Positions 21,057 through 61,282 of a DNA stretch of 64,000 nucleotides are shown piece after piece (positions within the stretch are counted from its first letter, which is position 1; each line of letters opens with the position of its first letter). Source of the stretch: Scyliorhinus canicula (taxonomy: Eukaryota); contig NC_052151.1 of assembly GCF_902713615.1 (NCBI RefSeq), positions 200,969,703 through 201,033,702 of the forward strand, written 5' to 3'. The notes beneath the pieces were generated by a model that worked only from the letters and a program-made list of their open reading frames with translations, made no database searches and had not been told where the DNA came from. Position numbers and translations under genes: made by a program.

Positions 21057-21125
21057 TCACTGGGGCTTTTTAAACTTCTGAGGCTGCAACGACTCGTAGG
21101 TATCAAGCTGACGCCCTTCCAGACC
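21057..21125 (-). CDS. FCER1G: FcR gamma-type gene exon 6 coding part (GLEGRQLDTYESLQPQKFKKPQ*)
   Basis: ccctctccccaatag| acceptor; homologous to human [20 protein letters not shown]; completes ITAM YTGL-x7-YESL; TGA at 21057-21059. Confidence 0.95.
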   Translation of the reverse strand, partial: GLEGRQLDTYESLQPQKFKKPQ

Positions 21126-21139
21126 CTATTGGGGAGAGG

Positions 21140-21680
21140 GGGTGGGAGAGAGAGAGAGACGGGTTAGAGATAACGTCACAGGGAACAAGGGGGAGGAAAA
21201 GAGAGACAGAACACAGAGACAGAGAACAGAGAGAACGAGGCTGGTTAGAGATAATGCCACAGGTAGAGAGGCAGAGAGAGAGAGAGGCAGAGAGAGGAGA
21301 GGAGAGGCAGAGTGAGAGAGAGAGGCAGAGAGAGAGAGAGGTAGAGAGAGAGAAAGGTAGAGAACGAGACAGGCAGAAAGATAGGTCGACAGAGAGATGA
21401 GAAACAGACAGCAAAAGAGAGAGAGAGAGAGAGAGAAAGACACAGAAGAGAGACAGGCCGGGGGCGAGGGGAGGGGAGGCGAGGGGGGGGGGGGGGGGGG
21501 GAGACAAAGAAAAACAGAGAGAGATAGACATAGACAGACAGACAGAGAGAGAGAGACAGAGGGAGACACACACACACACAGAAACAGAGACAGACAGATA
21601 GATGGACAGAGGTAAACAGACAGAGACAGAGGGGCTAGAGAGAGAGAGAGAGAGAGAGAGAACGAGAAAGAGAGAACGAG
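21140..21680. repeat. GA-rich microsatellite/low-complexity tract
   Basis: (GA)n/GACA mosaics directly next to the exon 6 acceptor; source of spurious Ser/Leu ORFs. Confidence 0.9.
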
Positions 21681-21686
21681 ATTTTT

Positions 21687-22200
21687 GTAGACTACGAAGG
21701 GGTCCACACCGAGTTGAGAAAAGAAAATAAAGTTTTATCACAATAACTATTATTTAGACAGCACGAAAGATCCTCCCTCGTCGGTACCCAAACAGGCCGA
21801 CTGTATACTGAAGATAACTGTACATGGTTTAGGGTCCCCGCCCCCTTTAATGGGGGAGCTCATATTCAGTGAGGCTCATGGGAGTTTAATCATAGCCACC
21901 TTGTGTGATGGTATGGATTTGAGCCCTGCCATTGGTGCAGAGCACTGGCTTCCCATTGGCTCTGGCTGGTCATGTGCCTCTCGTCCGATTGGTTGGGACT
22001 AGTCATGTGACTGCTCTCCAATTGATCGAGAGGCAAGTAGGCCCTGCCTCCGAGGCGGGGTATAAGTACCCAGAGTTCCCGGCGGTCTGTCATTCTCTGT
22101 AGTCGACCACCGGGCTAACAACTAGCTGATTAAAGCCACAGTTCGGATCCTAAATGTGTCTTGAGTCGAATTGATGGTACATCACCTTGTAAGTCCCGTG
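21687..22200 (-). mobile_element. LTR-like fragment hosting a solo LTR
   Basis: tgtag end on +, LTR-like composition; right boundary uncertain. Confidence 0.4.
21904..22184 (+). mobile_element. Solo LTR (E1/E3-related family)
   Basis: TGTGATG...TACATCA termini; 5-bp TSD CCTTG; TATA (tataag) and ATTAAA 50 nt before the end. Confidence 0.9.
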
Positions 22201-22232
22201 TGGGGGGGGGAGAGAGAGAGAGACACACACAC

Positions 22233-22263
<31 letters not shown>

Positions 22264-22520
22264 CACACACACACACACACAAAGAAAGAGAGGGACAGAG
22301 AGAAATAGAGACACAGAGAAAGAGAGAGAAACACAGAGAAAGAGGGAGAGACAAAGAGAGAAACAGAGACACAGAGAAAGAGAGAGAGATACAAAGAGAG
22401 AAACAGAGAGAGAGACACGCACACAGAGAAGTGAGACAGAGAGAGAGAGACGGCGATAGAGACAGAGATAGAGGCAGAGACAGAGACAGAGAGAGAGATG
22501 GAGAGATTAGAAAGAGATAT
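22200..22520. repeat. GA/CA microsatellite tract
   Basis: Simple repeats. Confidence 0.9.
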
Positions 22521-23046
22521 AAAGACAGATAGACTGGTCCAGAAAGTGAAGTCGCAAAGGATCAGAATGAGTTGGCAAGATGGATACAGAACTGGCTCAG
22601 TCATAGAAGGCTGAGAATAGCAATGGAAGGGTGTTTTTCTGAATGGAGGGCTGTGACTAGTGGTGTTCCGCAGGGATCAGTGCTGGAGCCTTTCTCTTTT
22701 GTAATATATATAAATGATTTGGAGGAAAATGTATATTGTTATATGTAAATGATTATTAAGTTGGCGGACAACACAAAGGTGGGTGGAATTGCGGATAGCG
22801 ATGAGGACTGTCAGAGGATACAGCAGGATTTAGATTGTTTGGAGACTTGGGCAGAGAGATGGCAGATGGAGTTTTATCCGGACAAATGTGAGGTAATGCA
22901 TTTTGGAAGGTCTAATACAGGTGGGAAATATACCGTAAATGGCAGAACCTTTAAGAGTATTGACAATCAGAGAGATCGAGGTGTACAGGTCCACAGGTCA
23001 CTGAAATGGCAACACAGGGGAGAAGATAGTCAGGAAGGCATATGGC

Positions 23047-25902
23047 TTTAAGAGGGTGGGTAGGATAAGGCAGTGTCTCGGACATTTATAAGGAGCTTAT
23101 GGGGTCGGAGGAGACGCAGACCGAGGAGCTGAAGTGTAAGTGGGAGGAGGAGCTGGGAGGAGAGATAGAGGATGGTCTATGGGCAGACGCATTGAGTAGA
23201 GTCAACGCATCCGCAACATGTGCCAGGCTCAGCCTGATACAATTTAAGGTCGTTCATCGGGCTCATGTGACAGTGGCCCGGATGAGCAGATTCTTTGGGG
23301 TGGGAGACAGGTGCGCAAAATGTGCGGGAGGACCAGCGAACCATGTCCACATGTTCTGGGCATGTCCAAGGCTTAGGGGATTTTGGCAGGGGTTTGCGGA
23401 CGTCATGTCCACGGTGTTAAAAACAAGGGTGGCACTGAGTCCAAAGGTGGCGATTTTCAGGGTGTTGGAAGACCTGGGAATCCAGGAACAAAGAACAAAG
23501 AAAATTACAGCACAGGAACAGGCCCTTCGGCCCTCCCAGCCTGCGCCGATCCAGATCCTTTATCTAAACCTGTCTCCTATTTTCCCTCTGTTCCCGTCCG
23601 TTCATATACCTGTCCAGATGCCTCTTAAATGATGCTATCGTGCCCGCCTGTACCACCTCCGCTGGTAAAGCGTTCCAGGCACCCACCACCCTCTGCGTAA
23701 AAAACTTTCCACGCACATCTCCCTTATACTTTCCCCCTCTCACCTTGAAATCGTGACCCCTTGTAACTGACACCCCACTCTTGGAAAAAGCTTGTTGCTA
23801 TCCACCCTGTCCATACCTCTCATAATTTTGTAGACCTCAATCAGGTCCCCCGTCAACCTCCGTCTTTCCAACGAAAACAATTCTAATCTACTCAACCTTT
23901 CTTCATAGCTAGCACCCTCCATACCAGGCAACATCCTGGTGAACCTCCTCTGCACCCTCTCCAAAGCATCCACATCCCTCTGGTAATGTGGCGACCAGAA
24001 CTGCACGCAGTATTCCAAATGTGGCCTAACCAAAGTCCGATACAACTGTAACATGACCTGTCTACTCTTGTACTCAATACCCCGTCTGATGAAAGCAAGC
24101 ATGCTGTATGCCTTCTTGACAACTCTATCCACCTGCGTTGCCACCTTCAGGGTACAATGGACCTGAACTCCCAGATCTCTCTGTACATCAATTTTCCCCA
24201 GGACCCTTCAATTGACCATATAATCCGCTCTTGAATTTGATCTTCCAAAATGCATCACCTCGCATTTGCCTGGATTGAACACCATCTGCCATTTCTCTGC
24301 CCAACTCTCCAATCTATCTATATTTTGTTGTATTCTCTGAAAGTCCTCCTCGCTATCTGCAACTCCACCAATCTTAGTATCATCTGCAAACTTGCTAATC
24401 AGACCCCCTATACCTTCCTCCAGGTCATTTATGTAGATCACAAACAACAGTGGTCCGAGCACGGATCCCTGTGGAACACCACTAGTCACCCTTCTCCATT
24501 TTGAGACACTCCCTTCCACCACTAATCTCTGTCTCCTGTTGCCCAGCCAGTTCTTTATCCATCTATCTAGTACACCGTGAACCCCATATGACATCTTTTT
24601 CCATCAACCTGCCATGGGAAACCTTATCAAACGTCCATGTATATGACATCTACAGCCCTTCCCTCATCAATTAACTTTGTCACTTCCTCAAAGAATTCTA
24701 TTAGGTTTGTAAGACATGACCTTCCCTGCACAAAACCATGCTGCCTATCACTGATAAGTCTATTTTCTTCCAGATGTGAATAGATCCTATCCCTCAGTAT
24801 CTTCTCCAACAGTTTGCCTACCACTGACGTCAAGCTCACAGGTCTATAATACCCTGGATTTTCCCTGCTACCCTTCTTAAACAAAGGGACAACATTAGCA
24901 ATTCTCCTGTCCTCCGGGACCTCACCCGTGCTCAAGGATGCTGCAAAGATATCTGTTAAGGCCCCAGCTATTTCGACCCTCGCTTCCCTCAGCAACCTGG
25001 GATAGATCCCATCCGGTCCTGGGGACTTGTCCACCTTAATGTCTTTTAGAATACCCAAAACTTCCCCCTTCCATATGACAACTTGACCTAGAGTATTTAA
25101 ACATCCATCCCTAGTCTCAACATCCGACATGTCCCTCTCCTTGGTGAATACCGATGCAAAGTACTCATTAAGAATCTCACCCATTTCCTCTGAGTCCACG
25201 CATAAATTCCCTCTTTTGTCTTTGAGTGGGCCAATCCTTTCTCTAGTTACCCTCTTGCTCCTTACATATGAATAAAAGGCTTTGGGATTTTCCTTAACCC
25301 TGTTAGCCAAAGATATTTCATGACCCCTTTTAGCCCTCTTTATTGCGCGTTTGAGATTCGCCCTACTTTCCCGATATTCCTCCAAAGCTTCATCAGTTTT
25401 GAGTCGCCTCGATCTTATGTATGCTTCCTTTTTCATCTTAGCTCGTCTCACAATTTCACCCGTCATCCATGGTTCCCTAATCTTGCCATTTCTATCTCTC
25501 AGACGGTCTGGCCTTTGCTTCCCTGGTAGCCCGGAGACGGATACTATTAGCTTGGAGGGACTGAAAGCCCCCGAAGTCGGAGACCTGGCTATCGGACATG
25601 GCTAGCTTTCTCTGTTTGGAGAAAATCAAGTTCGCCTTGAGAGGGTCAATGTTAGGGTTCACCCGGAGGTGGCAACCGTTCGTCAACTTCTTCGCAGAAA
25701 ATTAATCGGCAGCAGAAGGTGGGGGGGGGGGGGGGGGGGGGGGGGGTAGTTTAGCTTAGAGTAGGGGGTTAATAAAGGTGGGGCCTGTAAGAGAGGGAGT
25801 CGGCTTTTGCACTATGTTTATAGTTTCATATCCATTGTTTATTGTGTTGTTGCTATAATACCAAAAAATACCTCAATAAAATGTTTACTAAAAAGAAAAA
25901 AA
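23047..25902 (+). mobile_element. 5'-truncated L1-clade LINE (ORF2 C-terminal Cys-rich domain, 3' UTR, A-tail), split by a CR1
   Basis: CAKCAGGPANHVHMFWAC motif; resumes at 25501 (LAFASLVARRRILLAW); aataaa plus A-tail; 13-bp TSD GAAGGCATAYGGC (23034-23046 and 25903-25915). Confidence 0.85.
23486..25500 (-). mobile_element. 5'-truncated CR1 LINE (about 2 kb)
   Basis: ORFs 24627-25466, 24208-24594 and 23740-24144 with KSPGPDGIYP, QHGFVQGRSCLTNL, YINDL, KFADDTK; 3' tail gaacaaagaacaaag. Confidence 0.92.
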
Positions 25903-26567
25903 GAAGGCATACGGCATACTTGCCTTCATCGGCTGGGGCATTGAGTTTAAAAATTGGCAAGTCATGTTGCAGCTGTATAGACCTTAGTTAGGCCTCATTT
26001 GGAGTATAGAGTTCAATTCTGGTTGCCACACTACCAGAAGGATGTGGAGGCTTTAGAGAGGGTGCAGAAGAGATTTACCAGGATGTTGCCTGGTATGGAG
26101 GGCATTAGCTATGAGGAGCGGTTGGAGAAGTTTGGTTTATTCTCACTGGAACGACGGAGGTGGAGGGGCGACCTGATAGAGGTCTACAAAATTATGAGGG
26201 ACACAGAGTGCATGATCAGAGGCTTTTCCCCGGGTAGAGGGGTCAATTACTAGGGGGCATAGGTTTAAGGTGCGAGGGGCAAGGTTTAGAGGAGATGTAC
26301 GAGGCAAGTGTTTTACACAGAGGTTAGTGGGTGCCTGGAACTCGCTGCCGGAGAAGGTGGTGGAAGTAGGTACGATAGTGACATTTAAGGGGCATCTTGA
26401 CAAATACATGAATAGGATGGGAATAGAGGGATATGGACCCAGGAAGTGTGGAAGGTTCCAGGTTAGACGGGCAGCATGGTCGGCATAGGCTTGGAGGGCC
26501 GAAGGGCCTGTTCCTGTGCTGTACTTTTCTTTGTTCTTTCACACAGAGAGAAACAGAGAAGAGAGAG

Positions 26568-26874: not shown

Positions 26875-27167
26875 NNNNNNNNNNNNNNNNNNNNNNNNNN
26901 NNNNNNNNNNNNNNNNNNNNNNNNNNNNNNNNNNNNNNNNNNNNNNNNNNNNNNNNNNNNNNNNNNNNNNNNNNNNNNNNNNNNNNNNNNNNNNNNNNNN
27001 NNNNNNNNNNNNNNNNNNNNNNNNNNNNNNNNNNNNNNNNNNNNNNNNNNNNNNNNNNNNNNNNNNNNNNNNNNNNNNNNNNNNNNNNNNNNNNNNNNNN
27101 NNNNNNNNNNNNNNNNNNNNNNNNNNNNNNNNNNNNNNNNNNNNNNNNNNNNNNNNNNNNNNNNNNN
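26875..27167. other. Assembly gap (293 N) in FCER1G intron 5
   Basis: N run. Confidence 1.
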
Positions 27168-27242
27168 GATAGAGGCAGGGAGAGACACAGACAGACAGAG
27201 AGAGAGAGAGACAGAGGCAGGGAGAGATAGAGATGGTCTCAC

Positions 27243-27263
27243 CGTGTAGATTCCTTCTTCTTT
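27243..27263 (-). CDS. FCER1G: FcR gamma-type gene exon 5 (KEEGIYT)
   Basis: cctcttctcccaaacag| acceptor and ACG|GTGAGA donor; 21 nt, the same size as human KSDGVYT. Confidence 0.92.
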
Positions 27264-27344
27264 CTGTTTGGGGAGAAGAGGAAATGATAGTTTAAACTTT
27301 GGTAAATGGCATGAACACATATCACACATTGGAATATTCATTGT

Positions 27345-27560
27345 GTGGCCAGAGTTCAGACAGCACGATGTGTACACAGCTGGATAAATAGAAAATTCAG
27401 GACAGGTACAGCACGGGGTTAGATACACAGTAAAGTTCACTCTACACTGTCCCCATCAAACACTCCCAGGACAGGTACAGCACGGGGTTGGATACAGAGT
27501 GAAGCTCCCTCTACACTGTCCCCATCAAATACTCCCAGGACAGGTACAGCACGGGGTTAG
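27345..27560. repeat. 69-bp satellite (about 3 copies, reverse orientation to 52245-53463)
   Basis: cagcacggggttagatacacagtaaag...ccccatcaaacactcccaggacaggta. Confidence 0.85.
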
Positions 27561-30500
27561 TGTGGTAGTCACCACTGTTTGTATAATACGTGTATTGGAG
27601 GTAATACGGTATGGCTCCTGTATTACAGGTACGGGGGTAGATCCCTGCCAGCTGGCTCCGCCCAGTAGGCGGAGTATAAATGTCTGTGCACACCGAGCTG
27701 CTGCCATTTCTGGTAGCAGCTGCAGGAGGCAATACATCTCTGGCTAATAAAGCCTCGATTATTCTCTACTCTTGTCTCGTCGTAATTAATAGTGCATCAA
27801 TTTATTAAGCAGAGATATTACAGCGATGGAACTTCGTATCAAGCCTGATCGCCTACAGCTGCACCCGTAAGCAGCCAACGCCACGTCGACCTTCGACCAC
27901 TGGCTAGCCTGTTTCGAGAGCTACCTCCGATCCGCAAAGGACCAACCCTCGGAAGAACAGAAGCTCCGGGTCCTTTACGCACGGGTGAGCTCTGATATTT
28001 TTCCCCTTATCCGGGATGTGCCCACTTACACTGAAGCAATGCAGCTCCTGAAAAAACATTATATTCGCCCGATCAACAAACTGTACGGCAGGCACCTCCT
28101 GTCCACGAGACAGCTACTCCCTGATGAGTCTTTAGACGATTTCTGCCGTGCCCTGCACATCCTGGCGAGGAACTGTGATTGCCAGGCAGTTTTGGCAGTC
28201 GAACATGGAGAACTTTTAATCAGGGACACTTTTGTTATGGACATGGGGTCAGTGTACATGTGCCAGCGCCAATTGGACGGGGGTACGTTTGACCTTGCGG
28301 CAACCAGGCAGCTCGCGAATTCGCTAACAGTAGCCTCCCGTAACGTACAGTCGTACGCTCCCGACCGCTCGGCACCCTCATCGTGGGCCCCACCAGCTTC
28401 CGCCCCCAGCCCACCCCAAGCCTGCGCCGCAAGGCAGCCAGCCAATCCCAGGGGGCCCAAATGCTACTTCTGCGGGCAGACTAAACACCCCCGCCAGCAC
28501 TGCCCGGCGCGGAGCGCACCCTGCAAGGCCTGCGGGAAGAAGGGACCGCATTGCTGCGGTGTGCCAGGCCCGGTCGATCGCTGCTGTAACCAGCCCTATT
28601 GTTCCTGCAGCCGCCACGTGCGACCCTTGGCCGCCGCCATTTTCGCCCCCGCAACCCACATGCGTGGGCGCAGCCACTTTCCCTTCATCAGGCCCATGGG
28701 TGCCGCCATCTTCCCCCCCATCAGACCACTTGCGGCCTGTGGGCACCGCCATCTTTAAAGCCACCATCTTCGGCGCCATTTTGGACGGTGCCTCAGGACA
28801 CCTCATCGGGGCCACTCATCTCCCACAACCGCCGCCGACCAGCCCGGGGCCCACCAACGCCAGCCGCAGCTCGCCTCCATCACGCTCGACCAGTCACGGC
28901 CACACAACCTCGCAACCACGGAAACGACGGTGAAAGTCGATGGCCAGAAGACATCATGCCTTCTCAATTCCGGGAGCACCGAGAGCTTCATTCACCCCGA
29001 TACGGTAAGGCGCTGCTCCCTCACGGTCCATCCCATCAATCTCCCTGGCCTCCGGATCCAACTCCGTGTCGGTCCGGGGGTACTGCACCGCCACCCTCAC
29101 CATCCAGGGCATGGAGTTCAGCTGCTTCCAGCTCTACGTCCTCCCCAACCTCTGCGCTGCCCTGCTACTCGGCCTGGACTTCCAGTGCAACCTCCAAAGT
29201 CTAACCCTGAAATTCGGCGCGCCCCTACCACCCCTCACCGTATGCTGCCTCACGACCCTTAAGGTCGACCCGCCTTCTCTGTTTGCAAACCTCACCCCGG
29301 ATTGCAAACCCGTCGTCACCAGGAGCAGACGGTACAGCGCCCAGGACAGGACCTACATCAGGTCTGAGGTCCAGCGGCTGCTACGGGAAGGTATTATCGA
29401 GGCCAGCAACAGCCCCTGGAGAGCTCAACTAGTAGTTGTGAAGACTGGGGAGAAACACAGGATTGGTCATTGACTACAGTCAGACCATCGATCGGTACAC
29501 GCAGCTCGATGCGTACCCCCTCCCACGCATATCTGATACGGTCAATCAGATTGCGCCGAGTACCGGGTCTTCGCTACAGTGGACCTTAAATCTGCCTACC
29601 ACCAGCTCCCCATCCGCAAGGCGGACCGTCAGTACACTGCGTTCGAAGCAGACGGACGCCTTTACCACTTCCTTAGGGTTCCCTTCAACGCCACTAACGA
29701 GGTCTCGGTCTTCCAACGGGAGATGGACCGAATGGTTGACCGGTACGGACTGTGGGCCACCTTCCCATACCTGGATAACATCACCATCTGTGGTCACAAC
29801 CAGCAGGACCACGACGCTAACCTTTTCAAATTTCTCCACACCGCCAAACTCCTCAACCTCACGTACAATAAGGAGAAATGCGTGTTCTGCACCAACGGCT
29901 TAGCCATCCTCGGCTATGTTGTGGAAAATGGAGTTCTAGGGCCCAACCCCGGCCGCATGCGCCCCCTCATGGAACTCCCCCTCCCCCACTGCCCCAAGGC
30001 CCTCAAACGATGTCTGGGGATTTTCTCCTACTATGCCCAGTGGGTCCCTAACTATGCGGACAAGGCCCGCCCACTCATTCAGTCCACAGTTTTCCCCCTG
30101 ACGGCTGAGGCCCGCCAGGCCGTCAACCGTATCAAGGCCGACATCGCCAAGGCCACAATGCACGCGGTCGACGAGTCCCTCCCCTTTCAAGTCGAGAGCG
30201 ATGCATCGGACGTCGCTTTGGCCGCCACCCTCAACCAGGCAGGCAGGCCCGCGGCATTCTTTTCCCGCACCATCCGTGCCTCCGAAATTCGGCACTCCTC
30301 TGTCGAAAAGGAGGCCCAAGCTCATAGAAGCTGTGCGGCATTGGAGGCATTACCTGGCCGGCAGGAGATTCACTCTCCTCACTGACCAACGGTCGGTTGC
30401 CTTCATGTTTAATAATACACAGCGGGGCAAGATCAAAAACGATTAAATCTTAAGGTGGGAGGATCGAGCTCTCTACCTACAATTACGAGATTTTGTATCG

Positions 30501-31917
30501 CCCCAGCAAGCTCAACGATCCCCCGATGCCCTGTCCCGAGGTACATGTGCCAGCGCACAAGTGGACCGACTCCGGGCCCTACACAATAGTCTCTGTCACC
30601 CGGGGGTCACCCGGTTCTTCCATTTCATCAAGGCGCACAACCTGTCCTATTCCATTGAGGAGGTCAGGGCTGTCACCAGAGACTGCCAGGTCTGCGCGGA
30701 GTGCAAACCGCACTTCTACCGGCCAGACCGAGCACACCTGGTGAAGGCCTCCAGTCCCTTTGAACGCCTCAGCATGGACTTCAAAGGGCCCCTCCTCTTC
30801 TCCGACTGAAACACGTACTTCCTGAACGTGGTCGATGAATACTCCAGATTTCCCTTCGCCATCCCATGCCCCGATATGACGTCTGCCACGGTTATTAAAG
30901 CACTCAACAGCATCTTCTCCCTGTTCGGCTTCCCTGCCTACGTCCACAGCGACCGGGGATCCTCATTTATGGGCGATGAGCTGCGTCAGTTCCAGCTCAG
31001 CAAGGGCATTGCCTCGAGCAGGATGACCAGCTACAACCCCCGGGGAAACGGGCAGGTAGAGAGGGAGAATGGGACGGTCTGGAAGGCCGTCCTGCTGGCC
31101 CTACGGCCTACAAATCTCCCGGTCTCCCGCTGGAAGGATGTCCTCCTCGACCCACTCCACTCCATCCGATTGCTACTCTGCACCGCGACTAATGAACCCC
31201 CCATAAACGTCTCCTTGCCTTCCCTGGGAAGTCCACCTCCGGTGTTTTGCTCCCAACATGGCTGGCAGCTCCAGGACCCGTTCTCCTCCGCAAACATGTC
31301 CTGCTCCACAAGGCGGACCCGTTGGTCGAATGGGTACAGCTGCTGCTTGGGAACCCGCAGTACACCTACGTGGTGTACCCCGACGGCCGCAAATACACAG
31401 TCTCCCTCAGGGACCTGGCACCAGCTGGGTCCCCACCCATTACCCCACCACTCGGCACCCCCCCCCCCCCTCCGATTGCCCCGGCGCCACTCCCCCTCCC
31501 CCTAGCGCACCTCACTACAGCCCCCGCCCCAGGATGATCCGTCCTCCCATTGGTTCCACCAGGGGATGAGGATGAGGACTACAAGCTCCCGGTGTCACAG
31601 GCGACCATGCCGGCGCCTGCATCACCACCGGGACTGCGGCGCTCACAGCGGAGGATCAAGGCACCTGACCGGCTGAACTTGTAAATTTTCACCAGACTGT
31701 AAACTTTAAATTCTCACATACCTGTAAATAGTTTAACACCACCCTCGCTGGACTCTTTTTTTCACGGGGTGAATGTGGTAGTCCCCACTGTTTGTATAAT
31801 ACGTGTATTGGAGGTAATACGGTAAGGCTCCTGTACTACAGGTATGGGGGTAGATCCCTGCCTGCTGGCTCCGCCCAGTAGGCGGAGTATAAATGTGTGG
31901 CCTCTCCGATCAGCCAT
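27561..31917 (+). mobile_element. Degenerate Gypsy LTR retrotransposon (element E2) filling FCER1G intron 4
   Basis: 5' LTR 27561-27799; gag ATG 27826 with a premature stop; protease LNSGS, RT FPYLDN, RNase H, integrase VHSDRG with frameshifts; PPT; 3' LTR 31774-31917 truncated; no TGG PBS. Confidence 0.93.
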
Positions 31918-31995
31918 CAGACGCAGAAAGCAGTTCTAATGCTGCGTCTCAGATTTAAGAGAATTGAAAGGGTGGAAATTTAAATTTCAACTCAC

Positions 31996-32070
31996 TGGCA
32001 TTTCCTTCCGAGATTCCATTTTCCCTGGATTTATTCCAAGATAAATGTCCTTCTGGTGGGCTCGTATTTC
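31996..32070 (-). CDS. FCER1G: FcR gamma-type gene exon 4 (extra ITAM exon EIRAHQKDIYLGINPGKMESRKEMP)
   Basis: tttgtatatttgacag| acceptor and CCA|GTGAGT donor; 75 nt, phase 0-0, no stop; the only unique sequence between two repeat blocks; completes ITAM YEEI-x7-YLGI. Confidence 0.85.
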
Positions 32071-32095
32071 CTGTCAAATATACAAATCGCAGACA

Positions 32096-33817
32096 TTAAC
32101 CCCCTCACCCACCTCTCCCCATTTACACACACTGGGCAGCCTGTTCCCCTATCGGAGGGGGGATTAACCCCCTCACCCACCTCTCCCCATTTACACACAC
32201 TGGGCAGCCTGTTCCCCTATCGGAGGGGGATTAACCCCCTCACCCACCTCTCCCCATTTACACACACTGGGCAGCCTGTTCCCCTATCGGAGGGGGGATT
32301 AACCCCCTCACCCACCTCTCCCCATTTACACACACTGGGCAGCCTGTTCCCCTATCGGAGGGTGATTAACCCCCTCACCCACCTCTCCCCATTTACACAC
32401 ACTGGGCAGCCTGTTCCCCTATCGGAGGGGGATTAACCCCCTCACCCACCTCTCCCCATTTACACACACTGGGCAGCCTGTTCCCCTATCGGAGGGGGGA
32501 TTAACCCCCTCACCCACCTCTCCCCATTTACACACACTGGGCAGCCTGTTCCCCTATCAGAGGGGGATTAACCCCCTCACCCACCTCTCCCCATTTACAC
32601 ACACTGGGCAGCCTGTTCCCCTATCGGAGGGGGGATTAACCCCCTCACCCACCTCTCCCCATTTACACACACTGGGCAGCCTGTTCCCCTATCGGAGGGG
32701 GGATAACCCCCTCACCCACCTCTCCCCATTTACACACACTGGGCAGCCTGTTCCCCTATCGGAGGGGGATTAACCCCCTCACCCACCTCTCCCCATTTAC
32801 ACACACTGGGCAGCCTGTTCCCCTATCGGAGGGGGATTAACCCCCTCACCCACCTCTCCCCAATTACACACACTGGGCAGCCTGTTCCCCTATCGGAGGG
32901 GGGATTAACCCCCTCACCCACCTCTCCCCATTTACACAGACTGGGCAGCCTGTTCCCCTATCGGAGGGGGATTAACCCCCTCACCCACCTCTCCCCATTT
33001 ACACACACTGGGCAGCCTGTACCCCTATCGGAGGGGGATTAACCCCCTCACCCACCTCTCCCCATTTACACACACTGGGCAGCCTGTTCCCCTATCGGAG
33101 GGGGGATTAACCCCCTCACCCACCTCTCCCCATTTACACACACTGGGCAGCCTGTTCCCCTATCAGAGGGGGATTAACCCCCTCACCCACCTCTCCCCAT
33201 TTACACACACTGGGCAGCCTGTTCCCCTATCGGAGGGGGATTAACCCCCTTACCCACCTCTCCCCATTTACACACACTGGGCAGCCTGTTCCCCTATCGG
33301 AGGGGGATTAACCCCCTCACCCACCCCTCCCCATTTACACACACTGGGCAGCCTGTTCCCCTATCGGAGGGGGATTAACCCCCTCACCCACCTCTCCCCA
33401 TTTACACACACTGGGCAGCCTGTTCCCCTATCGGAGGGGGATTAACCCCCTCACCCACCTCTCCCCATTTACACACACTGGGCAGCCTGTTCCCCTATCG
33501 GAGGGGGATTAACCCCCTCACCCACCTCTCCCCATTTACACACACTGGGCAGCCTGTTCCCCTATCGGAGGGGGGATTAACCCCCTCACCCACCTCTCCC
33601 CATTTACACACACTGGGCAGCCTGTACCCCTATCGGAGGGGGATTACCCCCCTCACCCACCTCTCCCCATTTACACACACTGGGCAGCCTGTTCCCCTAT
33701 CGGAGGGGGATTAACCCCCTCACCCACCTCTCCCCATTTACACACACTGGGCAGCCTGTTCCCCTATCGGAGGGGGATTAACCCCCTCACCCACCTCTCC
33801 CCATTTACACACACTGG
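32096..33817. repeat. 67/68-bp minisatellite, about 25 near-identical copies
   Basis: ttaaccccctcacccacctctccccatttacacacactgggcagcctgttcccctatcggaggggga. Confidence 0.95.
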
Positions 33818-34135
33818 GCGACGATTGTATTTGGATTGAGTGGAGTGACGATTGTATTTGGACTGAGTGGAGCGACGATTGTATTTGGACTGAGTGAAGC
33901 GACGATTGTATTTGGATTGAGTGGAGCGACGATTGTATTTGGACTGAGTGGAGTGACGTTTGTATTTGGACTGAGTGGAGCGACGATTGTATTTGGACTG
34001 AGTGGAGCGACGATTGTATTTGGATTGAGTGGAGTGACGTTTGTATTTGGACTGAGTGGAGCGACGATTGTATTTGGATTGAGTGGAGTGACGATTGTAT
34101 TTGGACTGAGTGGAGCGACGATTGTATTTGAATTG
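33818..34135. repeat. 27-bp minisatellite, about 12 copies
   Basis: gcgacgattgtatttggactgagtgga. Confidence 0.92.
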
Positions 34136-34140
34136 AACAA

Positions 34141-34266
34141 TGATGCCCTGTTCCCGCCAGTCAGCTTCAGTCCTGTTTGATGCCGCTGTTCCCGCCAGTC
34201 AGCTTCAGTCCTGTTTGATGCCCTGTTCCCGCCAGTCAGCTTCAGTCCTGTTTGATGCCGCTGTTC
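34141..34266. repeat. 37/38-bp repeat, about 3.5 copies
   Basis: tgatgccctgttcccgccagtcagcttcagtcctgtt. Confidence 0.85.
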
Positions 34267-34344: not shown

Positions 34345-34395
34345 CTCATAATCTGAGCCCTGAGCAGCTGCTGACTCCTTCTTGCGCATCTGGAG
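34345..34395 (-). CDS. FCER1G: FcR gamma-type gene exon 3 (LQMRKKESAAAQGSDYE)
   Basis: ctcttgatctttattcag| acceptor and GAG|GTAAGA donor; 51 nt, phase 0-0; homologous to human IQVRKAAITSYE. Confidence 0.92.
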
Positions 34396-34589: not shown

Positions 34590-37500
34590 CGTGTTACTGA
34601 CTGTATCCCTACTGATGTTAATCCAGCTCCCTCACACTGTCACTCAGTAACCCCTCTCCCCCAGCACCCTGTGTTACTGACTGTATCCCTACTGATGTTA
34701 ATCCAGCTCCCTCACACTGTCACTCAGTAACCCCTCTGCCCCAGCACCCTGTGTTACTGACTGTATCTCTACTGATGTTAATCCAGCTCCCTCACACTGT
34801 CACTCAGTAACTGCTCTCCCCCAGCACCCTGCGTTACTGACTGTATCTCTACTGATGTTAATCCAGCTCCCTCGCACTGTCACTCAGTAACCCCTCTCCC
34901 CCAGTACCCTGTGTTACTGACTGTATCCCTACTGATGTTAATCCAGCTCCCTCACATTGTCACTCAGTAACCCCTCTCCCCCAGCACCCTGTGTTACTGA
35001 CTGTATCTCTACTGATGTTAATCCAGCTCCCTCACACTGTCACTCAGTAACCCCTCTCCCCCAGCACCATGTGTTACTGACTGTATCACTACTGATGTTA
35101 ATCCAGCTCCCTCACACTGCCACTCAGTAACCCCTCACCCCCAGCACCCTGTGTTACTGACTGTATCCCTACTGAGGTTAATCCAGCTCCCTCACACTGT
35201 CACTCAGTAACCCCTCTCCCCCAGCACCCTGTGTTACTGACTGTATCTCTACTGATGTTAATCCAGCTCCCTCACACTCACTCAGTAACCCCTCACCCCC
35301 AGCACCCTGTGTTACTGACTGTATCTCTACTGATGTTAATCCAGCTCCCTCACACTGTCACTCAGTAACTGCTCTCCCCCAGCACCCTGTGTTACTGACT
35401 GTATCTCTACTGATGTTAATCCAGCTCCCTCACACTGTCACTCAGTAACTCCTCTCCTCCAGCACCCTGTGTTACTGACTGTATCTCCACTGATGTTAAT
35501 CCAGCTCCCTCAGACTGTCACTCAGTAATCCCTCTCCCCAGCACCCTGTGTTACTGACTGTATCTCTACTGATGTTAATCCAGCTCCCTCACACTGTCAC
35601 TCAGTAACCCCTCTCCCCCAGCACCCTGTGTTACTGACTGTATCTCTACTGATGTTAATCCAGCTCCCTCACACTGTCACTCAGTAACTGCTCTCCCCCA
35701 GCACCCTGCATTACTGACTGTATCTCTACTGATGTTAATCCAGCTCCCTCACACTGTCACTCAGTAACCCCTCACCCCCAGCACCCTGTGTTACTGACTG
35801 TATCTCTACTGATGTTAATCCAGCTCCCTCACACTGTCACTCAGTAACTGCTCTCCCCCAGCACCCTGCATTACTGACTGTATCTCTACTGATGTTAATC
35901 CAGCTCCCTCGCACTGTCACTCAGTAACCCCTCTCCCCCAGTACCCTGTGTTACTGACTGTATCTCTACTGATGTTAATCCAGCTCCCTCACACTGTCAC
36001 TCAGTAACCCCTCTCCCCCAGCACCCTGTGTTGCTGACTGTATCCCTACTGATGTTAATCCAGCTCCCTCACACTGCCACTCAGTAACCCCTCACCCCCA
36101 GCACCCTGTGTTACTGACTGTATCCCTACTGATGTTAATCCAGCTCCCTCACACAGTCACTCAGTAACCGCTCTCCCCCAGCACCCTGTGTTACTGACTG
36201 TATCTCTACTGATGTTAATCCAGCTCCCTCACACTGTCACTCAGTAACTCCTCTCCTCCAGCACCCTGTGTTACTGACTGTATCTCTACTGATGTTAATC
36301 CAGCTCCCTCACACTGTCACTCAGTAACCCCTCACCCCCAGCACCCTGTGTTACTGACTGTATCTCTACTGATGTTAATCCAGCTCCCTCACTGTCACTC
36401 AGTAACCCCTCTCCCCCAGCACCCTGTGTTACTGACTGTATCTCTACTGATGTTAATCCAGCTCCCTCACATTGTCACTCAGTAACCCCTCTCCCCCAGC
36501 ACCCTGTGTTACTGACTGTATCTCTACTGATGTTAATCCAGCTCCCTCACACTCACTCAGTAACCCCTCACCCCCAGCACCCTGTGTTACTGACTGTATC
36601 TCTACTGATGTTAATCCAGCTCCCTCACACTGTCACTCAGTAACTGCTCTCCCCCAGCACCCTGTGTTACTGACTGTATCTCTACTGATGTTAATCCAGC
36701 TCCCTCACACTGTCACTCAGTAACTCCTCTCCTCCAGCACCCTGTGTTACTGACTGTATCTCCACTGATGTTAATCCAGCTCCCTCAGACTGTCACTCAG
36801 TAATCCCTCTCCCCAGCACCCTGTGTTACTGACTGTATCTCTACTGATGTTAATCCAGCTCCCTCACACTGTCACTCAGTAACCCCTCTCCCCCAGCACC
36901 CTGTGTTACTGACTGTATCTCTACTGATGTTAATCCAGCTCCCTCACACTGTCACTCAGTAACTGCTCTCCCCCAGCACCCTGCATTACTGACTGTATCT
37001 CTACTGATGTTAATCCAGCTCCCTCACACTGTCACTCAGTAACCCCTCACCCCCAGCACCCTGTGTTACTGACTGTATCTCTACTGATGTTAATCCAGCT
37101 CCCTCACACTGTCACTCAGTAACTGCTCTCCCCCAGCACCCTGCATTACTGACTGTATCTCTACTGATGTTAATCCAGCTCCCTCGCACTGTCACTCAGT
37201 AACCCCTCTCCCCCAGTACCCTGTGTTACTGACTGTATCTCTACTGATGTTAATCCAGCTCCCTCACACTGTCACTCAGTAACCCCTCTCCCCCAGCACC
37301 CTGTGTTGCTGACTGTATCCCTACTGATGTTAATCCAGCTCCCTCACACTGCCACTCAGTAACCCCTCACCCCCAGCACCCTGTGTTACTGACTGTATCC
37401 CTACTGATGTTAATCCAGCTCCCTCACACAGTCACTCAGTAACCGCTCTCCCCCAGCACCCTGTGTTACTGACTGTATCTCTACTGATGTTAATCCAGCT

Positions 37501-40633: not shown

Positions 40634-40725
40634 CTTCAGACGGCAGTAGAGTGCAGTTAACACTATCCCATAGACAAACAGGATAGCATCCAATACGTAA
40701 CAGACCTCAGGTGGCTGCAGTGCCT
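40634..40725 (-). CDS. FCER1G: FcR gamma-type gene exon 2 (ectodomain + transmembrane: [31 protein letters not shown])
   Basis: cttcatctag| acceptor and AAG|GTAAGG donor; 92 nt; aligns with human [30 protein letters not shown]; dimer Cys25, TM Asp29 and FcR gamma-type YCRLK are retained. Confidence 0.97.
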
Positions 40726-44625: not shown

Positions 44626-44752
44626 TGAGTTCCGCAGGTGTTTCGGCCGCGATTGATCGAGCTTGATTGCTCCTAGTTGCGGGTAGTCAGAGTCCTCAGT
44701 TAAGTCGGACTCACAAAGTGGCTGCCTGGAGTCACAAAATGGCCACCTGGAG

Positions 44753-45683
44753 TCACAAAATGGCCGCCGCCGTCGGTCGCACGAGTCGGGCTTTCAAAGA
44801 TGGCCGCCGCCAAGATGGCCGCTCCCATGACTCGCACGAGGTCGATGACGCATCGGAAGTGGGCGTGTCCGACCACCGCGCGGCCGCGTTGCGGGGCCTG
44901 TGAGACCGGGAGCTTGATTTCTGGGCCTGGTGAGGATTTTGTTTGTGGCCTTTGGGCCCAGCCAGGCAGACTTTAGCGAAATGCCCTTTCTTCCCGCAGT
45001 CGTTGCAGATCGCGGAGCGGGCCGGGCAACGTTGCCGTGGGTGCTGACCTTGCCCACAGAAATAGCACGGGGAATCCCCGGAGTGAGCGGATCGCCGCGC
45101 GGCGCAGGCCTGTAGCGTGGCTGAGCCTGGAGGGGTTTGCAAGGTCCGTGGAGTATGTACGGAGGTTACGGTGGGCTGTTTCTAGAGAAGAGGCGAGCGT
45201 TACCGTGCCTTGGAGATCCTTTGCCCCGTCTTCTAGGAGCCGCTGCCGGATGTACGAGGACCTGATACCGGACACAAAGGCATTGCGAATATGCAAGTTC
45301 ATGTGTGTTTCTGCCGTCACTGCTTTATGGTTGCAGTTCCTCGCGAGCGCAGTAAGTCTCTTTGCGTACTCGTCCAGAGTTTCCCCGGAACGCTGGCTGC
45401 AGGTTGAGAGCAAATGTCTGGCGTATACCTCGTTAATCGGCTTCACAAAGCGTTTCGTCAGTATTTCGACCCCAGCTTCGTAATTTGCAGCGTTCTCGAT
45501 CGTGGAGGAGAGTCGGTGGCCCACCCGGCCATGTAGTAAACGCAGCTTGTGAGCGCCGTCGACATCAGTCGCTGAGGAGTCAATATAGTCCTCAAAACAC
45601 CGCAGCCAATATTTAAACATTTGCGGGGCTTCCGGCGACCGAGCGTCCAGGTTGAGTTTCTCCGGCTTTAGAGCGCTGTCCAT
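44753..45683 (-). pseudogene. E3 gag with CCHC knuckles, disrupted by single-base frameshifts
   Basis: ORF 44973-45683 switches frame near 45130 into 44753-45142 (CYFCGQGQH, CNDCGKKGHFAKVC); second shift near 44800. Confidence 0.8.
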
Positions 45684-55151: not shown

Positions 55152-55184
<33 letters not shown>

Positions 55185-56320: not shown

Positions 56321-56670
56321 GGGCAGCACGGTAGCATTGTGGATAGCACAATCGCTTCACAGCTCCAGGGTCCCAGGTTCGATTCCCGGCTTGGGTCACT
56401 GTCTGTGCGGAGTCTGCACATCCTCCCCGTGTGCGCGTGGGTTTCCTCCGGGTGCTCCGGTTTCCTCCCACAGTCCAAAGATGTGCAGGTTAGGTGGATT
56501 GGCCATGATAAATTGCCCTTAGTGTCCAAAATTGCCCTTAGTGTTGGATGGGGTTACTGGATTATGTGGATAGGGTGGAGGTGTTGTCCTTGGGTAGGGT
56601 GCTCTTTCCAAGAGCCGGTGCAGACTCGATGGGCCGAATGGCCTCCTCCTGCACTGTAAATTCTATGAAA
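56321..56670 (+). mobile_element. Full-length HE1-type V-SINE
   Basis: gggcagcacggtagc head with pol III B-box ggttcgattccc, V-domain and CR1 tail. Confidence 0.9.
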
Positions 56671-56872
56671 TACTCCCCCTTTCTGGAAGTTCCTATTGAG
56701 TCTGCTCCCACCGCCCTTTCAGACAGAACCTTCCAGATCACAACAACTCTCTGTGTAAAAACATTTCTCCTCATCCTCATCTCCCCCTCTGCTTCTTTTA
56801 CTGATTCTCTTCAATCTGTGTCCCTCTGGTTCCCCACCCTCCTGTCACTGGGAACACTCCCTCCTTCTTTAA

Positions 56873-57560
56873 GGGCAGCACGGTAGCATTTGGGGGCAGC
56901 AGGGTAGCATAGTGGTTAGCATAAATGCTTCACAGCTCCAGGTCCCATGTTCGATTCCCGGCTGGGTCACTGTCTGTGCGGAGTCTGCACGTCCTCCCCG
57001 TGTGTGCGTGGGTTTCCTCCGGGTGCTCCGGTTTCCTCCCACAGTCCAAAGAGGTGCGGGTTAGGTGGATTGGCCATGCTAAATTGCCCGTAGTGTCCTA
57101 ATAAAAGTAAGGTTAAGGGGGGAGGGTTGTTGGGTTACGGGTATAGGGTGGATGCGTGGGTTTGAGTAGGGTGATCATGGCTCGGCACAACATCGAGGGC
57201 CGAAGGGCCTGTTCTGTGCTGTACTGTTCTATGTTATAGAATTATAGAACAGTACAGCACAGAACAGGCCCTTCGGCCCTCGATGTTGTGCCGAACAATG
57301 ATCACCCTACTTAAACCCACGTAACCCGTATACCCATAACCCAACAATTAACCTTACACTACGGGCAATTTAGCATGGCCAATCCACCTAACCCGCACAT
57401 CTTTGGACTGTGGGAGGAAACCGGAGCACCCGGAGGAAACCCACGCACACACGGGGAGGACGTGCAGACTCCACACAGACAGTGACCCAGCCGGGAATCG
57501 AACCTGGGACCCTGGAGCTGTGAAGCATTGATGCTAACCACCATGCTACCGTGAGGCCCC
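56873..57560. mobile_element. Two HE1-type V-SINEs tail-to-tail (56873-57235 +; 57236-57560 -)
   Basis: Inverted pair sharing a perfect arm of about 50 bp. Confidence 0.9.
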
Positions 57561-57959
57561 TTTACTCCATCTGAACACTGACCGTCTCGATTCAACCCCC
57601 CCCCACCCCCACCCCCCCACCCAACCATCTCTGCTGGAAGGAGAAGAACCCCAGCTTCTCCAGTCTCTGTTTACCTCGCACCTTCCCGGGCTCTTTATGG
57701 GGACGTGCCAAAACAGAATTTGACACGTGCTTCCTCAGAAGGCAGGTGGGGCAGCGAACCGACAGCTCGGTCAATGGAGCTGCTTCAAAGGAGAGTCTGA
57801 GGAGGAGGAGAAGGTTAGTGAGTGGTGGAAGGGTTTGGGGAGGGGATCCCAGAGTTTAGGTCCCAGGCAGCTGAAGGCACGCCCGCCAATAGCGGGGCGA
57901 TGGGAATGGGCTGATGGTCACCAGGCTGGAATCGGAGAAACTCGGAGATCCCGGGGGGG

Positions 57960-60945
57960 GGTTACAGTGATAGGGAGGGTTGTAGGGGCTGGAGGATGTG
58001 ACACAGATAGGGAGGGTTGTAGGGGCTGGAGGAGGTTACAGAGATAGGGAGGGTTGTAGGGGCTGGAGGATGTTACAGAGATAGGGAGGGTTGTAGGGGC
58101 TGGAGGAGGTTACAGAGATAGGGAGGGTTGTAGGGGCTGGAGGAGGTTACAGACATGAGGGGGTTGTAGGGGCTGGAGGAGGTTACAGAGATAGGGAGAG
58201 TTGTAGGGACTGGAGGAGGTTACAGAGATAGGGAGGGTTGTAGGGGCTGGAGGATGTTACAGAGATAGGGAGAGTTGTAGAGGCTGTAGAGGCTGGAGAG
58301 GGTTACAGAGATAGGGAGGGTTGATGGGGCTGGAGGAGGTTACAGAGATAGGGAGGGTTGATGGGGCTGGAGGAGGTTACAGAGATAGGGAGGGTTGTAG
58401 TGACTGGAGGAGGTTACAGAGATAGGGAGGGTTGTAGAGGCTGGAGGAGGTTACAGAGATAGGGAGGGTTGTAGGGACTGGAGGAGGTTACAGAGATAGA
58501 GAGGGTTGTAGAGGCTGGAGGAGGTTACAGAGATAGGGAGGGTTGTAGGGGCTGGAGGAGGTTACAGAGATAGGGAGGGTTGTAGGGGCTGGAGGAGGTT
58601 ACAGAGATAGGGAGGGATGTAGGGCTGGAGGATGTTACAGAGATAGGGAGAGTTGTAGAGGCTGTAGAGGCTGGAGAGGGTTACAGAGATAGGGAGGGTT
58701 GATGGGGCTGGAGGAGGTTACAGAGATAGGGAGGGTTGATGGGGCTGGAGGAGGTTACAGAGATAGGGAGGGTTGTAGTGACTGGAGGAGGTTACAGAGA
58801 TAGGGAGGGTTGTAGAGGCTGGAGGAGGTTACAGAGATAGGGAGGGTTGTAGGGACTGGAGGAGGTTACAGAGATAGAGAGGGTTGTAGAGGCTGGAGGA
58901 GGTTACAGAGATAGGGAGGGTTGATGGGGCTGGAGGAGGGTTACAGAGATAGGGAGGGTTGGAGAGGCTGGAGGAGGTTACAGATAGGGAGGATTGTAGG
59001 GGCTGGAGGGGGTTACAAAGATAGGGACAATTTTAATAATTTTTCCTCGTGTCACACATTAGACTCACATAAACACTGCAATGAAGTTACTGTGAAAAGC
59101 CCCTAGTCGCCACATTCCGGCGCCTGTTCAGGTACACGGAGGGAGAATTCAGAATGTCCAATTCACCTAACCTACGCGTCTTTTCAGACTTTGTGGGAGG
59201 AAACCGGAGCATCCGGAGGCAACCCACGCAGACACGGGGAGAGCATGCAGACTCTGAACAGGCAGTGACCCAAGCCGGCTCCTGGCTCTGTGAAGCAACA
59301 TTGCTAACCACTGTGCTACCATGCTGCCTGGAAGGGGGTTAGAGATAGGGAGGGATGTAGGGGCTAGAGATTACAGAGATAGAGAGGGTTGTAGGGGCTG
59401 GAGGAGGTTACAGAGATGGGGAGGGTTGTAGGGACTGGAGGAGGTTACAGAGATAGGGAGGGTCGTAGGGGCTGGAGGAGGTTACAGAGATAGGGAGGGT
59501 TGTAGGGACTGAACATAGAACATAGAACAGTACAGCACAGAACAGGCCCTTCGGCCCTCGATGTTGTGCCGAACAATGATCACCCCACTTAAACCCACGT
59601 AACCCGTAACCCAACAATCCCCCCATTAACCTTACACTACGGGCAATTTAGCATGGCCAATCCACCTAACCCGCACATCTTTGGACTGTGGGAGGAAACC
59701 GGAGCACCCGGAGGAAACCCACGCGCACACGGGGAGGACGTGCAGACTCCACACAGACAGTGACCCAGCCGGGAATCGAACCTGGGACCCTGGAGCTGTG
59801 AAGCATTGATGCTAACCACCATGCTACCGTGAGGCCCCTGGTTGTAGGGCTGGAGGAGGTTACAGAGATAGGGAGGGTTGTAGGGACTGAGAGAGGTGAC
59901 AGAGATAGGGAGGGTTGTAGGGACTGAGAGAGGTGACAGAGATAGGGAGGGTTGTAGAGGCTGGAGGGGGTTACAGAGATTGGGAGGGTTGCAAAGTCTG
60001 GAGGGGGTTACAGAGATAGGGACAATTTTAATCATAATTATTACTAGTGTCACACATTCGACTCACATTAACACTGCAATGAAGTTACTGTGAAAAGCCC
60101 CTAGTCGCCACATTCCGGTGCATGTTCGTGTACACTGAGGGAGAATTCAGAATGTCCAATTCACCTAACAGCACGTCTTTCGGGACATGAGAGGAGGAAA
60201 CTGGAGCACCCGGAGGAAACCCACGCAGACACAGGGAGAACGTGCAGACTCCGCATAGACAGTGATTCATGCCTTGTCCTGGCTCTGTGAAGCAACATTG
60301 CTAACCAGTGTGTTACCATGCTGCCTGTAAGGGGGTTAGAGATAGGGAGGGATGTAGGGGCTGGAGGAGGCTACAGAGATAGGGAGGATTGTCGGGGCTG
60401 GAGGAGGTGACAGAGATAGGGAGGGTTGTAGGGGCTGGAGGAGGTTACAGAGATAGGGAGGGTTGTAGGGACTGGAGGAGGTGACAGAGATAGGGAGGGT
60501 TGTAGGGGGTGGAGGAGGTTACAGAGATAGGGAGGGATGTAGGGGCTGGAGGAGGTTACAGAGATAGGGAGGGTTGTAGGGACTGGAGGAGGCTACAGAG
60601 TTAGGGAGGGTTGTAGGGGCTGGAGGAGGTTACAGAGATAGGGAGGGTTGTAGGGGCTGGAGGAGGTTACAGAGATAGGGAGGGTTGTAGTGGCTGGAGG
60701 AGGTTACAGAGATAGGGAGGGTTGCAGGGTCTGGAGGAGGTTACAGAGATAGGGAGGGTTGTGGGGGCTGGAGGAGGTTACAGAGATAGGGAGGTTGTAG
60801 GGGCTGGAGGAGGTTACAGAGATAGGGAGGGTTATAGGGGTTGGAGGAGGTTACAGAGATAGGGAGGGTTGTAGCGACTGGTGGAGGTTACAGGGATAGG
60901 GAGGGTTGTAGGGGCTGGAGGAGGTTACAGAGATAGGGAGGGTGA
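57960..60945. repeat. 37-bp G-rich minisatellite with three embedded SINEs (59040-59328, 59511-59838, 60026-60326, all minus)
   Basis: gagatagggagggttgtaggggctggaggaggttaca. Confidence 0.92.
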
Positions 60946-61233
60946 AAGGACCATGGAGGGATTTGAAAATTGAGGCGTTGCCGGATGAGGAGTAAATAGG
61001 TCCAGTCCGAGTGTGACCATCAGCATTTCTGGGAACTGAAGACATTAGTGATATCTCGAGGTTGGCCACATTCTAATAAAACCCTTATCGTGTGTTGATA
61101 AATTAACACTGGAAAGGGAAGGGGGTGGGGTGGTGAGAATTGGAATGGGTTTCGTGGGAGAGGTGCTGGGCCTTGCGGGAGATTAAGAAATGGAAAAAGA
61201 AATAATCAGGAAATAAGGAAATGAATGACCCAC

Positions 61234-61282
61234 CTGCTGGCACCACCTGAAGCAGGAGGAACAGGGTCCAGATGTACTGCAT
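61234..61282 (-). CDS. FCER1G: FcR gamma-type gene exon 1 (signal peptide MQYIWTLFLLLQVVPA + phase-1 G)
   Basis: gacagccATG context; 49 coding nt ending CAG|GTGGGT donor; same 49-nt leader-exon size and phase as mammalian FCER1G; joins in frame to exon 2. Confidence 0.9.

Follow-up and report, generated by a model that had tools for sequence, protein, structure and literature searches.

A catshark Fc receptor gamma chain gene with an extra exon for a second activation motif

The gamma chain of Fc receptors (FcR gamma, encoded by FCER1G) is the common signalling chain of Fc receptors, of many natural killer and myeloid receptors and of C-type lectins. We describe here a gene of this type in a stretch of 64,000 nucleotides from the catshark Scyliorhinus canicula (RefSeq assembly GCF_902713615.1, contig NC_052151.1, positions 200,969,703 to 201,033,702 of the forward strand), referred to below as the window. 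The explanation that accounts best for the observations, and in which we have high confidence, is that this gene is the catshark orthologue of FCER1G, that its mRNA includes an additional exon (exon 4), and that the product is a type I membrane adaptor of 118 residues carrying two canonical ITAMs (immunoreceptor tyrosine-based activation motifs).

The window has a G+C content of 52% and contains two runs of N. A six-frame motif search located the gamma transmembrane segment and the C-terminal YESL on the minus strand, and the FCER1G-type gene was found there as six exons of 49, 92, 51, 75, 21 and 69 nt, spread over about 40 kb and bounded by GT-AG borders (Table 1). Apart from exon 1, which lacks an acceptor, and exon 6, which terminates at TGA, all have an AG acceptor and a GT donor. 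The coding sequence of 357 nt is translated into 118 residues, with Y63EEI-x7-Y74LGI as ITAM1 and Y95TGL-x7-Y106ESL as ITAM2. This translation was 100% identical to an S. canicula protein held at NCBI (P0001) under the name 'high affinity immunoglobulin epsilon receptor subunit gamma-like', and the gene model is already present in the automated NCBI annotation as "FCER1G-like". A first-pass annotation of the window had proposed six GT-AG exons, 118 residues and both ITAMs; all were borne out by the exact coordinates and by the identity to the NCBI protein. Exon 4 is symmetric (phase 0), and when it was left out computationally the frame stayed intact and a protein of 93 residues with one ITAM resulted.

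One of the N runs falls in intron 5 (27242-21126); its start lies 75 nt beyond the exon-5 donor, and 5749 nt separate its end from the exon-6 acceptor. Since the gap lies wholly within this intron, the frame and the continuity of the coding sequence do not depend on it. Nothing coding was found between exons 5 and 6 in the locus of the little skate (L004), and the shark orthologues have no extra residues at this place.

The motif in exon 4 is, taken alone, not beyond chance: the window has three phase-0 open reading frames (ORFs) between AG and GT that contain x[LI]-x6-8-Yxx[LI], and shuffled sequences have 5.9 of them on average. It is RNA and conservation that show exon 4 to be real. When contigs of four sequencing runs, from four studies, were placed on positions 27168-32094 (exon 4 to exon 5), the junction from 27263 to 31996 was present in all four runs, with CT..AC borders that correspond to GT..AG on the minus strand. 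In three of these runs (X3, X11 and X12), the stretch 31996-32072 is covered exactly by contigs of 657-895 nt, and in X3 and X11 the loose ends of the contigs past 32072 match, as reverse complement, the 3' end of exon 3. The contig geometry leaves 178 nt on the 5' side of exon 4 and 640 nt on the 3' side, for which about 650 nt were expected. Sampled words from exon 4 were recovered completely (4/4) in 19 runs of 7 studies, with contig totals of transcriptome size, and for the 3' exon and untranslated region (UTR; 20480-21130) 52-95% of the sampled words were recovered in 18 runs of 9 studies. Two points have to be held against these data. The status of the runs as RNA is an automated guess, the spliced contigs being nonetheless not genomic DNA; and the contigs give the presence of an exon-4 transcript, not an inclusion ratio. 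A transcript joining exons 3, 4 and 5 exists in the catshark, and it is the form that was retained in the contigs.

Exon 4 might instead be an open frame that lies between GT-AG borders by chance, or an artefact of annotation, and stay outside the mature mRNA. The count in shuffled sequence, where frames bearing the motif are no rarer, would agree with this, as would the mediocre pyrimidine tract at the exon-4 acceptor. However, the contigs of four runs from four studies splice exon 4 to exon 5, those of two runs also splice it to exon 3, and the exon is found in frame, with both tyrosines kept, across sharks, rays and amphibians. We regard the artefact explanation as scarcely credible, and it is refuted by the spliced contigs. 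The first-pass annotation had allowed for an exon 4 that is never included in transcripts; the contigs include it.

To which of the two related families the gene belongs was judged from motifs and from a tree. Pfam family PF11628 (TCR_zetazeta) is on record for the catshark protein. The chain has the extracellular stub with a Cys and the transmembrane Asp (C-Y-x-L-D..L-F-x-Y-G), as FcR gamma requires, and residues C25, Y26, L28, D29, L32, F33, Y35, G36, T40, L42, Y43 and C44 were invariant in both gamma alignments. The gamma-type juxtamembrane motif LYC[RH]LK (LYCRLK in the catshark) and the C-terminal ITAM Y-T-G-L-x7-Y-E-[TS]-L are both present; zeta chains have LF/LY-[LIF]-[RK]-x-K-F and YQGL..YD[AS]L instead. 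In a maximum-likelihood tree of 60 rows, 37 gamma rows, the catshark among them, were separated with 100/100 support from 23 zeta and zeta-like rows, which comprised the CD3 zeta of chimaera, lungfish, lizard, frogs and mammals, teleost zeta and catfish CD247-like. The exon-4 columns were kept in the tree; the columns that carry the split between gamma and zeta are the shared ones of the N-terminus, the transmembrane part and the last ITAM. As judged from its sequence, the catshark gene is an FCER1G orthologue.

The competing assignment is to CD247 (CD3 zeta), or to a CD247-like paralogue that has lost one ITAM. It would fit the two ITAMs of the catshark chain and a Pfam family that is common to zeta. 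Against it stand the 100/100 split, which places the CD3 zeta of Callorhinchus and of the lungfish and the catfish CD247-like protein opposite the catshark; the LYCRLK motif and the last ITAM (YTGL..TYE[ST]L), which are gamma-specific; and the exon sizes (49/92/../21), which agree with those of gamma genes. The catshark chain showed neither three ITAMs nor a zeta-type motif nor a place in the zeta clade. This identity is refuted by the tree, and the probability that we leave to it is very small. A grouping with CD247-like genes, the outcome that the first-pass annotation had set against its own proposal, was not what the tree returned.

The distribution of the extra exon was surveyed with a profile of long gamma forms, and its presence (54-78 nt) was read from gene maps or from protein length. 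The insert was found in five further sharks, four rays, a chimaera, caecilians (four caecilian-type sequences), salamanders (three salamander-type sequences) and more than 15 frogs, and hence in all three orders of amphibians. It measures 25-26 residues in caecilians, 23-26 in salamanders and 20-24 in frogs. The spacing YxxL/I-x7-YxxL/I is canonical in nearly all carriers; one of the four rays has YEQM as the first half. That first half reads YEEI in all six sharks, and YEHL, YEQM or YEPL elsewhere. In the gamma chain of the chimaera Callorhinchus milii (P0056, 'ITAM-bearing signaling subunit', 116 residues) the extra exon is present and the first half of ITAM1 is degenerate, being one residue short (D-Y-G-I as compared with Y-E-x-[LI]), so that only the second tyrosine module is canonical.

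Exon maps were drawn for further loci. Exons 3, 4 and 5 measure 39, 75 and 21 nt in the little skate and 51, 54 and 27 nt in Xenopus tropicalis, exon 3 of the latter having the length of its catshark counterpart and, like it, ending in TATGAG. In both species exon 4 is in phase 0/0, follows directly on TATGAG and lies 220-375 nt below exon 3. The two-ITAM form of X. tropicalis, of 111 residues, is encoded by a Logan transcript contig. The FCER1G genes of alligator and sterlet have five exons, and the insert was absent from the amniote, bichir, sterlet, teleost, coelacanth and lungfish gene models surveyed. Isoforms that skip exon 4 are annotated in the shark S. torazame, the caecilian Geotrypetes and the newt Lissotriton (P0006, P0014 and P0066).

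Three database entries met in the survey deserve a remark. The protein of Rhincodon typus (P0007, 147 residues) is likely a faulty model that reads past the exon-5 donor and loses ITAM2. That of Protopterus annectens (P0132, 256 residues, with a gene range of 594 kb) is likely faulty as well and begins with about 160 unrelated residues. The UniRef entry P0129, labelled 'Rattus norvegicus' (119 residues), is an engineered construct in which rat gamma is followed by Strep-tag and FLAG-tag sequences.

We consider it probable that the extra exon had a single origin and that the two-ITAM state is ancestral to jawed vertebrates. In sharks and rays and in amphibians the exon occupies the same intron, in phase 0/0 and at the position right after the Tyr-Glu codons; it is 75 nt long in catshark and skate, and the X1 and X2 isoforms of a caecilian differ by the same 25 residues; and the core K-[DQ]-[IVL]-Y-x-E-[IL] is common to them. 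Because the exon behaves as a cassette that is already skipped in some transcripts, its loss would be cheap, a single harmless step. The modular build of the paralogue zeta, and the way in which gamma exons 3 and 4 align with zeta ITAM halves, point in the same direction. If the two-ITAM state is ancestral, the exon was probably lost in ray-finned fishes, in amniotes and, by current gene models, in coelacanth and lungfish.

Several results weigh against a single origin. The coelacanth and lungfish models are without the exon, so that one gain needs at least four losses as compared with two gains, and plain parsimony favours the two gains. Neither a longer isoform nor any further lungfish sequence came out of a protein search seeded with the lungfish chain. 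In an anchored BLOSUM comparison, the similarity between shark and amphibian exon 4 was weakly above that to other ITAM halves; chondrichthyan exon 4 was the best non-self class for amphibian exon 4, and the reverse was not true. No relic exon was found in the introns of alligator or sterlet: a hidden Markov model built from 35 exon-4 peptides was searched in every frame of the alligator (L001) and sterlet (L003) loci and scored at best 6.4 and 4.1 bits, respectively, neither hit lying in intron 3; and when exon 4 of catshark, of skate and of Xenopus was aligned to intron 3 of the alligator by nucleotide Smith-Waterman, the scores equalled those for control introns and shuffled sequences.

It may be noted that intron 3 of Alligator sinensis has, at L001:17190-17250, a pyrimidine tract with AG, a frame reading ..IKDIYLKRQEK and then GT, at roughly the place of exon 4 in skate and Xenopus. 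The 'KDIYL' of this stretch (L001:17211, 322 nt below exon 3) was tried as a relic of exon 4 and rejected; it scored 0.4 bits and is attributed to chance.

Under the opposing explanation the ancestral gamma chain had one ITAM, and the second ITAM exon arose twice, on the chondrichthyan stem and on the amphibian stem, by exonisation beside a Tyr-Glu that already stood at the end of exon 3. This history takes two steps on the species tree in place of one gain and at least four losses. It accords with the absence of the exon from the coelacanth, lungfish, amniote, bichir, sterlet and teleost models, with the lack of a relic in alligator or sterlet, and with a likeness between the shark and amphibian exons that is weak outside the ITAM-defining residues; the authors of the Xenopus study speak of an 'emergence' of the motif (PMC4536121). 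However, two independent gains would have had to hit the same intron in the same 0/0 phase, after the same TATGAG codons, and to arrive at the 75 nt of catshark and skate, the 25-residue difference of the caecilian isoforms and the shared core. Moreover, a skippable cassette can be lost in one harmless step, and the absence from coelacanth and lungfish rests on automated models. We hold two gains to be rather unlikely. The single origin, and with it the statement of the first-pass annotation that the ancestral gnathostome FcR gamma had two ITAMs, is made probable by the shared position, the shared phase and the similar length, but it is not established, since parsimony favours two gains.

The residue at the end of exon 3 was compared in species without exon 4. 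It is Tyr in coelacanth, in lungfish and in all 13 non-avian reptiles read. Among the mammals sampled, six of 15 have Tyr and the others H, F, N, R or C; none of the 12 birds has it, and no Tyr stands there in any ray-finned fish read. This position is homologous to the first Tyr of ITAM1 in the shark. The mixed picture in mammals and birds agrees with relaxed constraint; that reptiles and lobe-finned fishes have kept the Tyr for so long could mean either that it decays slowly or that it serves a function of its own. The proposal that the lone mammalian Tyr is a relic of an ITAM whose second half was lost with exon 4 is consistent with these data and plausible, but unproven, lineages that lack exon 4 having kept the Tyr over hundreds of millions of years. 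We lean slightly towards a fuller history, in which a two-ITAM gamma chain with a skippable exon, derived from a multi-ITAM gamma/zeta ancestor, was the original state of jawed vertebrates; exon skipping tuned the signal; ray-finned fishes, coelacanth, lungfish and amniotes fixed the skipped form; and the lone Tyr of reptiles and many mammals, that of humans included, is what remained of the ITAM.

The conserved residues, read together with the biology of mammalian FcR gamma, suggest how the catshark chain may work. It would form a disulfide-linked homodimer through Cys25, and the transmembrane Asp29 would dock onto activating receptors that bear a basic transmembrane residue. On receptor clustering, Src-family kinases would phosphorylate the ITAM tyrosines, and the phosphorylated ITAMs would recruit the tandem SH2 domains of Syk or ZAP-70. 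A dimer would offer four ITAMs with exon 4 and two without it, skipping of the exon being expected to yield the 93-residue, one-ITAM chain of mammalian type. Since annotations of S. torazame, of a caecilian and of a newt include forms without the exon, exon 4 is probably a switch of signal strength.

The membrane-proximal tyrosines need not form a Syk-recruiting ITAM; they could be separate docking sites, or an inhibitory, partly phosphorylated ITAM. YEEI is the preferred ligand of Src-family SH2 domains, and its occurrence in all six sharks, with YEHL, YEQM and YEPL elsewhere, would agree with such a role. So would the degenerate chimaera motif with its missing residue, and the catshark YLGI, which is without the acidic residue common at +1/+2. 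On the other hand, the spacing and the Leu or Ile at +3 are canonical in nearly all carriers of the exon, as would be expected if selection acted for tandem-SH2 binding. We judge a role apart from Syk to be improbable, and a second, canonical ITAM remains the preferred reading of exon 4.

Apart from the gamma gene, every long ORF in the window is retrotransposon-derived, and no host neighbour gene was found there; remains of Gypsy-type elements crowd both the introns and the flanks. One of these ORFs is the uninterrupted pol of a Gypsy-type long terminal repeat (LTR) retrotransposon in intron 1, with a gag ORF upstream of it, and decayed relatives are scattered over the window (Table 1). Most of intron 3 consists of minisatellites, the first array of which begins 24 nt upstream of the exon-4 acceptor. 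In intron 4, the segment 27333-27662, which includes a 69-bp unit repeated 2.4 times (27398-27560), showed contig depths of 10^4 to 10^5, many short contigs and loose ends; this element is highly repeated, transcribed and outside the gamma mRNA.

Table 1. Features of the window, given as positions in the 64,000-nt stretch
Feature	Position	Strand	Description
Exon 1, coding part	61234..61282	-	49 nt; start codon and signal peptide MQYIWTLFLLLQVVPA; ends in phase 1; donor gtgggt
Exon 2	40634..40725	-	92 nt; short extracellular stub, interchain Cys25, transmembrane helix with Asp29
Exon 3	34345..34395	-	51 nt; juxtamembrane linker; last residues Tyr63-Glu64, first half of ITAM1
Exon 4	31996..32070	-	75 nt; phase 0/0, cassette; E-I, 7-residue spacer and Y74LGI complete ITAM1; linker
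Exon 5	27243..27263	-	21 nt; KEEGIYT, first half of ITAM2
Exon 6, coding part	21057..21125	-	69 nt including stop; GL..Y106ESL, second half of ITAM2 and C-terminus
Probable 3' UTR, extent inferred	20495..21056	-	AATAAA at 20517-20512; from RNA words and contig geometry
Assembly gap (N run)	26875..27167		inside intron 5, non-coding
Minisatellites, most of intron 3	32095..34266		67-bp unit x25.6 (97% identity), 27-bp unit x11.6, 37-bp unit x3.4
Tandem repeat, intron 2	34591-35900		80-bp unit x16.4
Gypsy-type LTR retrotransposon, intron 1	41998-45683	-	uninterrupted 875-residue pol: protease, reverse transcriptase, RNase H, integrase
Decayed Gypsy-type relatives	16252-19664, 24627-25466, 27985-30385 (plus strand), 4025-5550		

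The catshark locus shows that sharks possess a gamma gene and express it with an extra ITAM exon. With the exon present in sharks, in rays, in a chimaera and in every amphibian order, what had been a peculiarity of Xenopus becomes a probable ancestral design. The gene also offers a model for change in ITAM number, by gain or loss of a symmetric exon with alternative splicing as the intermediate step, and the isoforms of 118 and 93 residues are a natural pair for relating ITAM number to signal strength. We see in this a modest advance for comparative immunology and not a new kind of system.

A survey of 2014 reported no gamma chain in cartilaginous fish (Akula et al., PMC4016189). In the literature searched, from which most subscription journals were missing, a two-ITAM gamma chain was described for Xenopus only, and we found no report that dealt with the gamma chain of a shark or that traced the second ITAM more widely. 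Mammalian FCER1G and the catshark chain have in common a signal peptide, the Cys, the Asp in the membrane, LYCRLK and the last ITAM (YTGL-x7-YE[TS]L), and the first-pass annotation gave mammalian exon sizes of 49, 92 and 21 nt; the mammalian gene differs in having five exons, one ITAM and a lone residue at the end of exon 3.

CD247 is a paralogue that shares PF11628 and the Cys/Asp transmembrane design with the catshark gamma gene, but it has three ITAMs, another juxtamembrane motif and a separate clade (100/100), and chimaera and lungfish each possess a CD3 zeta of their own beside gamma. Its ITAMs are each split across two exons, according to PMC4536121. When gamma and zeta chains were aligned together, the Tyr that closes gamma exon 3 fell opposite the first half of zeta ITAM1 and exon 4 opposite the second half of zeta ITAM2, as if the two-ITAM gamma tail lacked the part of zeta that runs from the second half of ITAM1 through the first half of ITAM2. 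With both exons aligned to zeta ITAM halves, the earlier description of the gene as an architectural intermediate between FCER1G and CD247 is a fair one. It was also observed that exon 4 of frog gamma (..KQIYSEIGKGE..) resembles ITAM2 of tetrapod zeta (..AEAYSEIGMKGE..), and exon 4 of shark gamma (..YHELKPGK..) that of chimaera zeta (..YGELKPTQ..). These likenesses could stem from common descent, from parallel constraint or from an exchange of sequence between the two genes, which are linked.

The teleost genes fcer1gl and cd247l, like the catshark gene, encode small adaptors of the gamma/zeta family in which the number of ITAMs varies. Neither is the shark counterpart: fcer1gl (Pygocentrus, Epinephelus) falls in the gamma clade and has one ITAM and no equivalent of exon 4, and cd247l (catfish and sardine-type) falls in the zeta clade. 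The teleost precedent that had been suggested for a two-ITAM gene of this kind has to be replaced by Xenopus FcR gamma, the closest published case.

In the paper that describes it (Guselnikov et al. 2015, PMC4536121, where Guselnikov et al. 2003 is cited), Xenopus FcR gamma, treated there for X. laevis, has six exons and a second ITAM, a feature called unique to Xenopus. Like the catshark gene, it has six exons in place of five, with an extra phase-0 exon between the exon that ends in Tyr-Glu and the short exon that ends in ..YT; the extra ITAM is membrane-proximal and split in its first YxxL module, and the transmembrane part is the same. The two differ in exon lengths, which from exon 3 to exon 5 are 51/54/27 nt in X. 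tropicalis and 51/75/21 nt in the catshark, the extra exon itself measuring 54 and 75 nt, respectively, and in exon sequences that are loosely alike. The six-exon, two-ITAM layout is therefore already known as the Xenopus type, and it is found here in a new and much older lineage.

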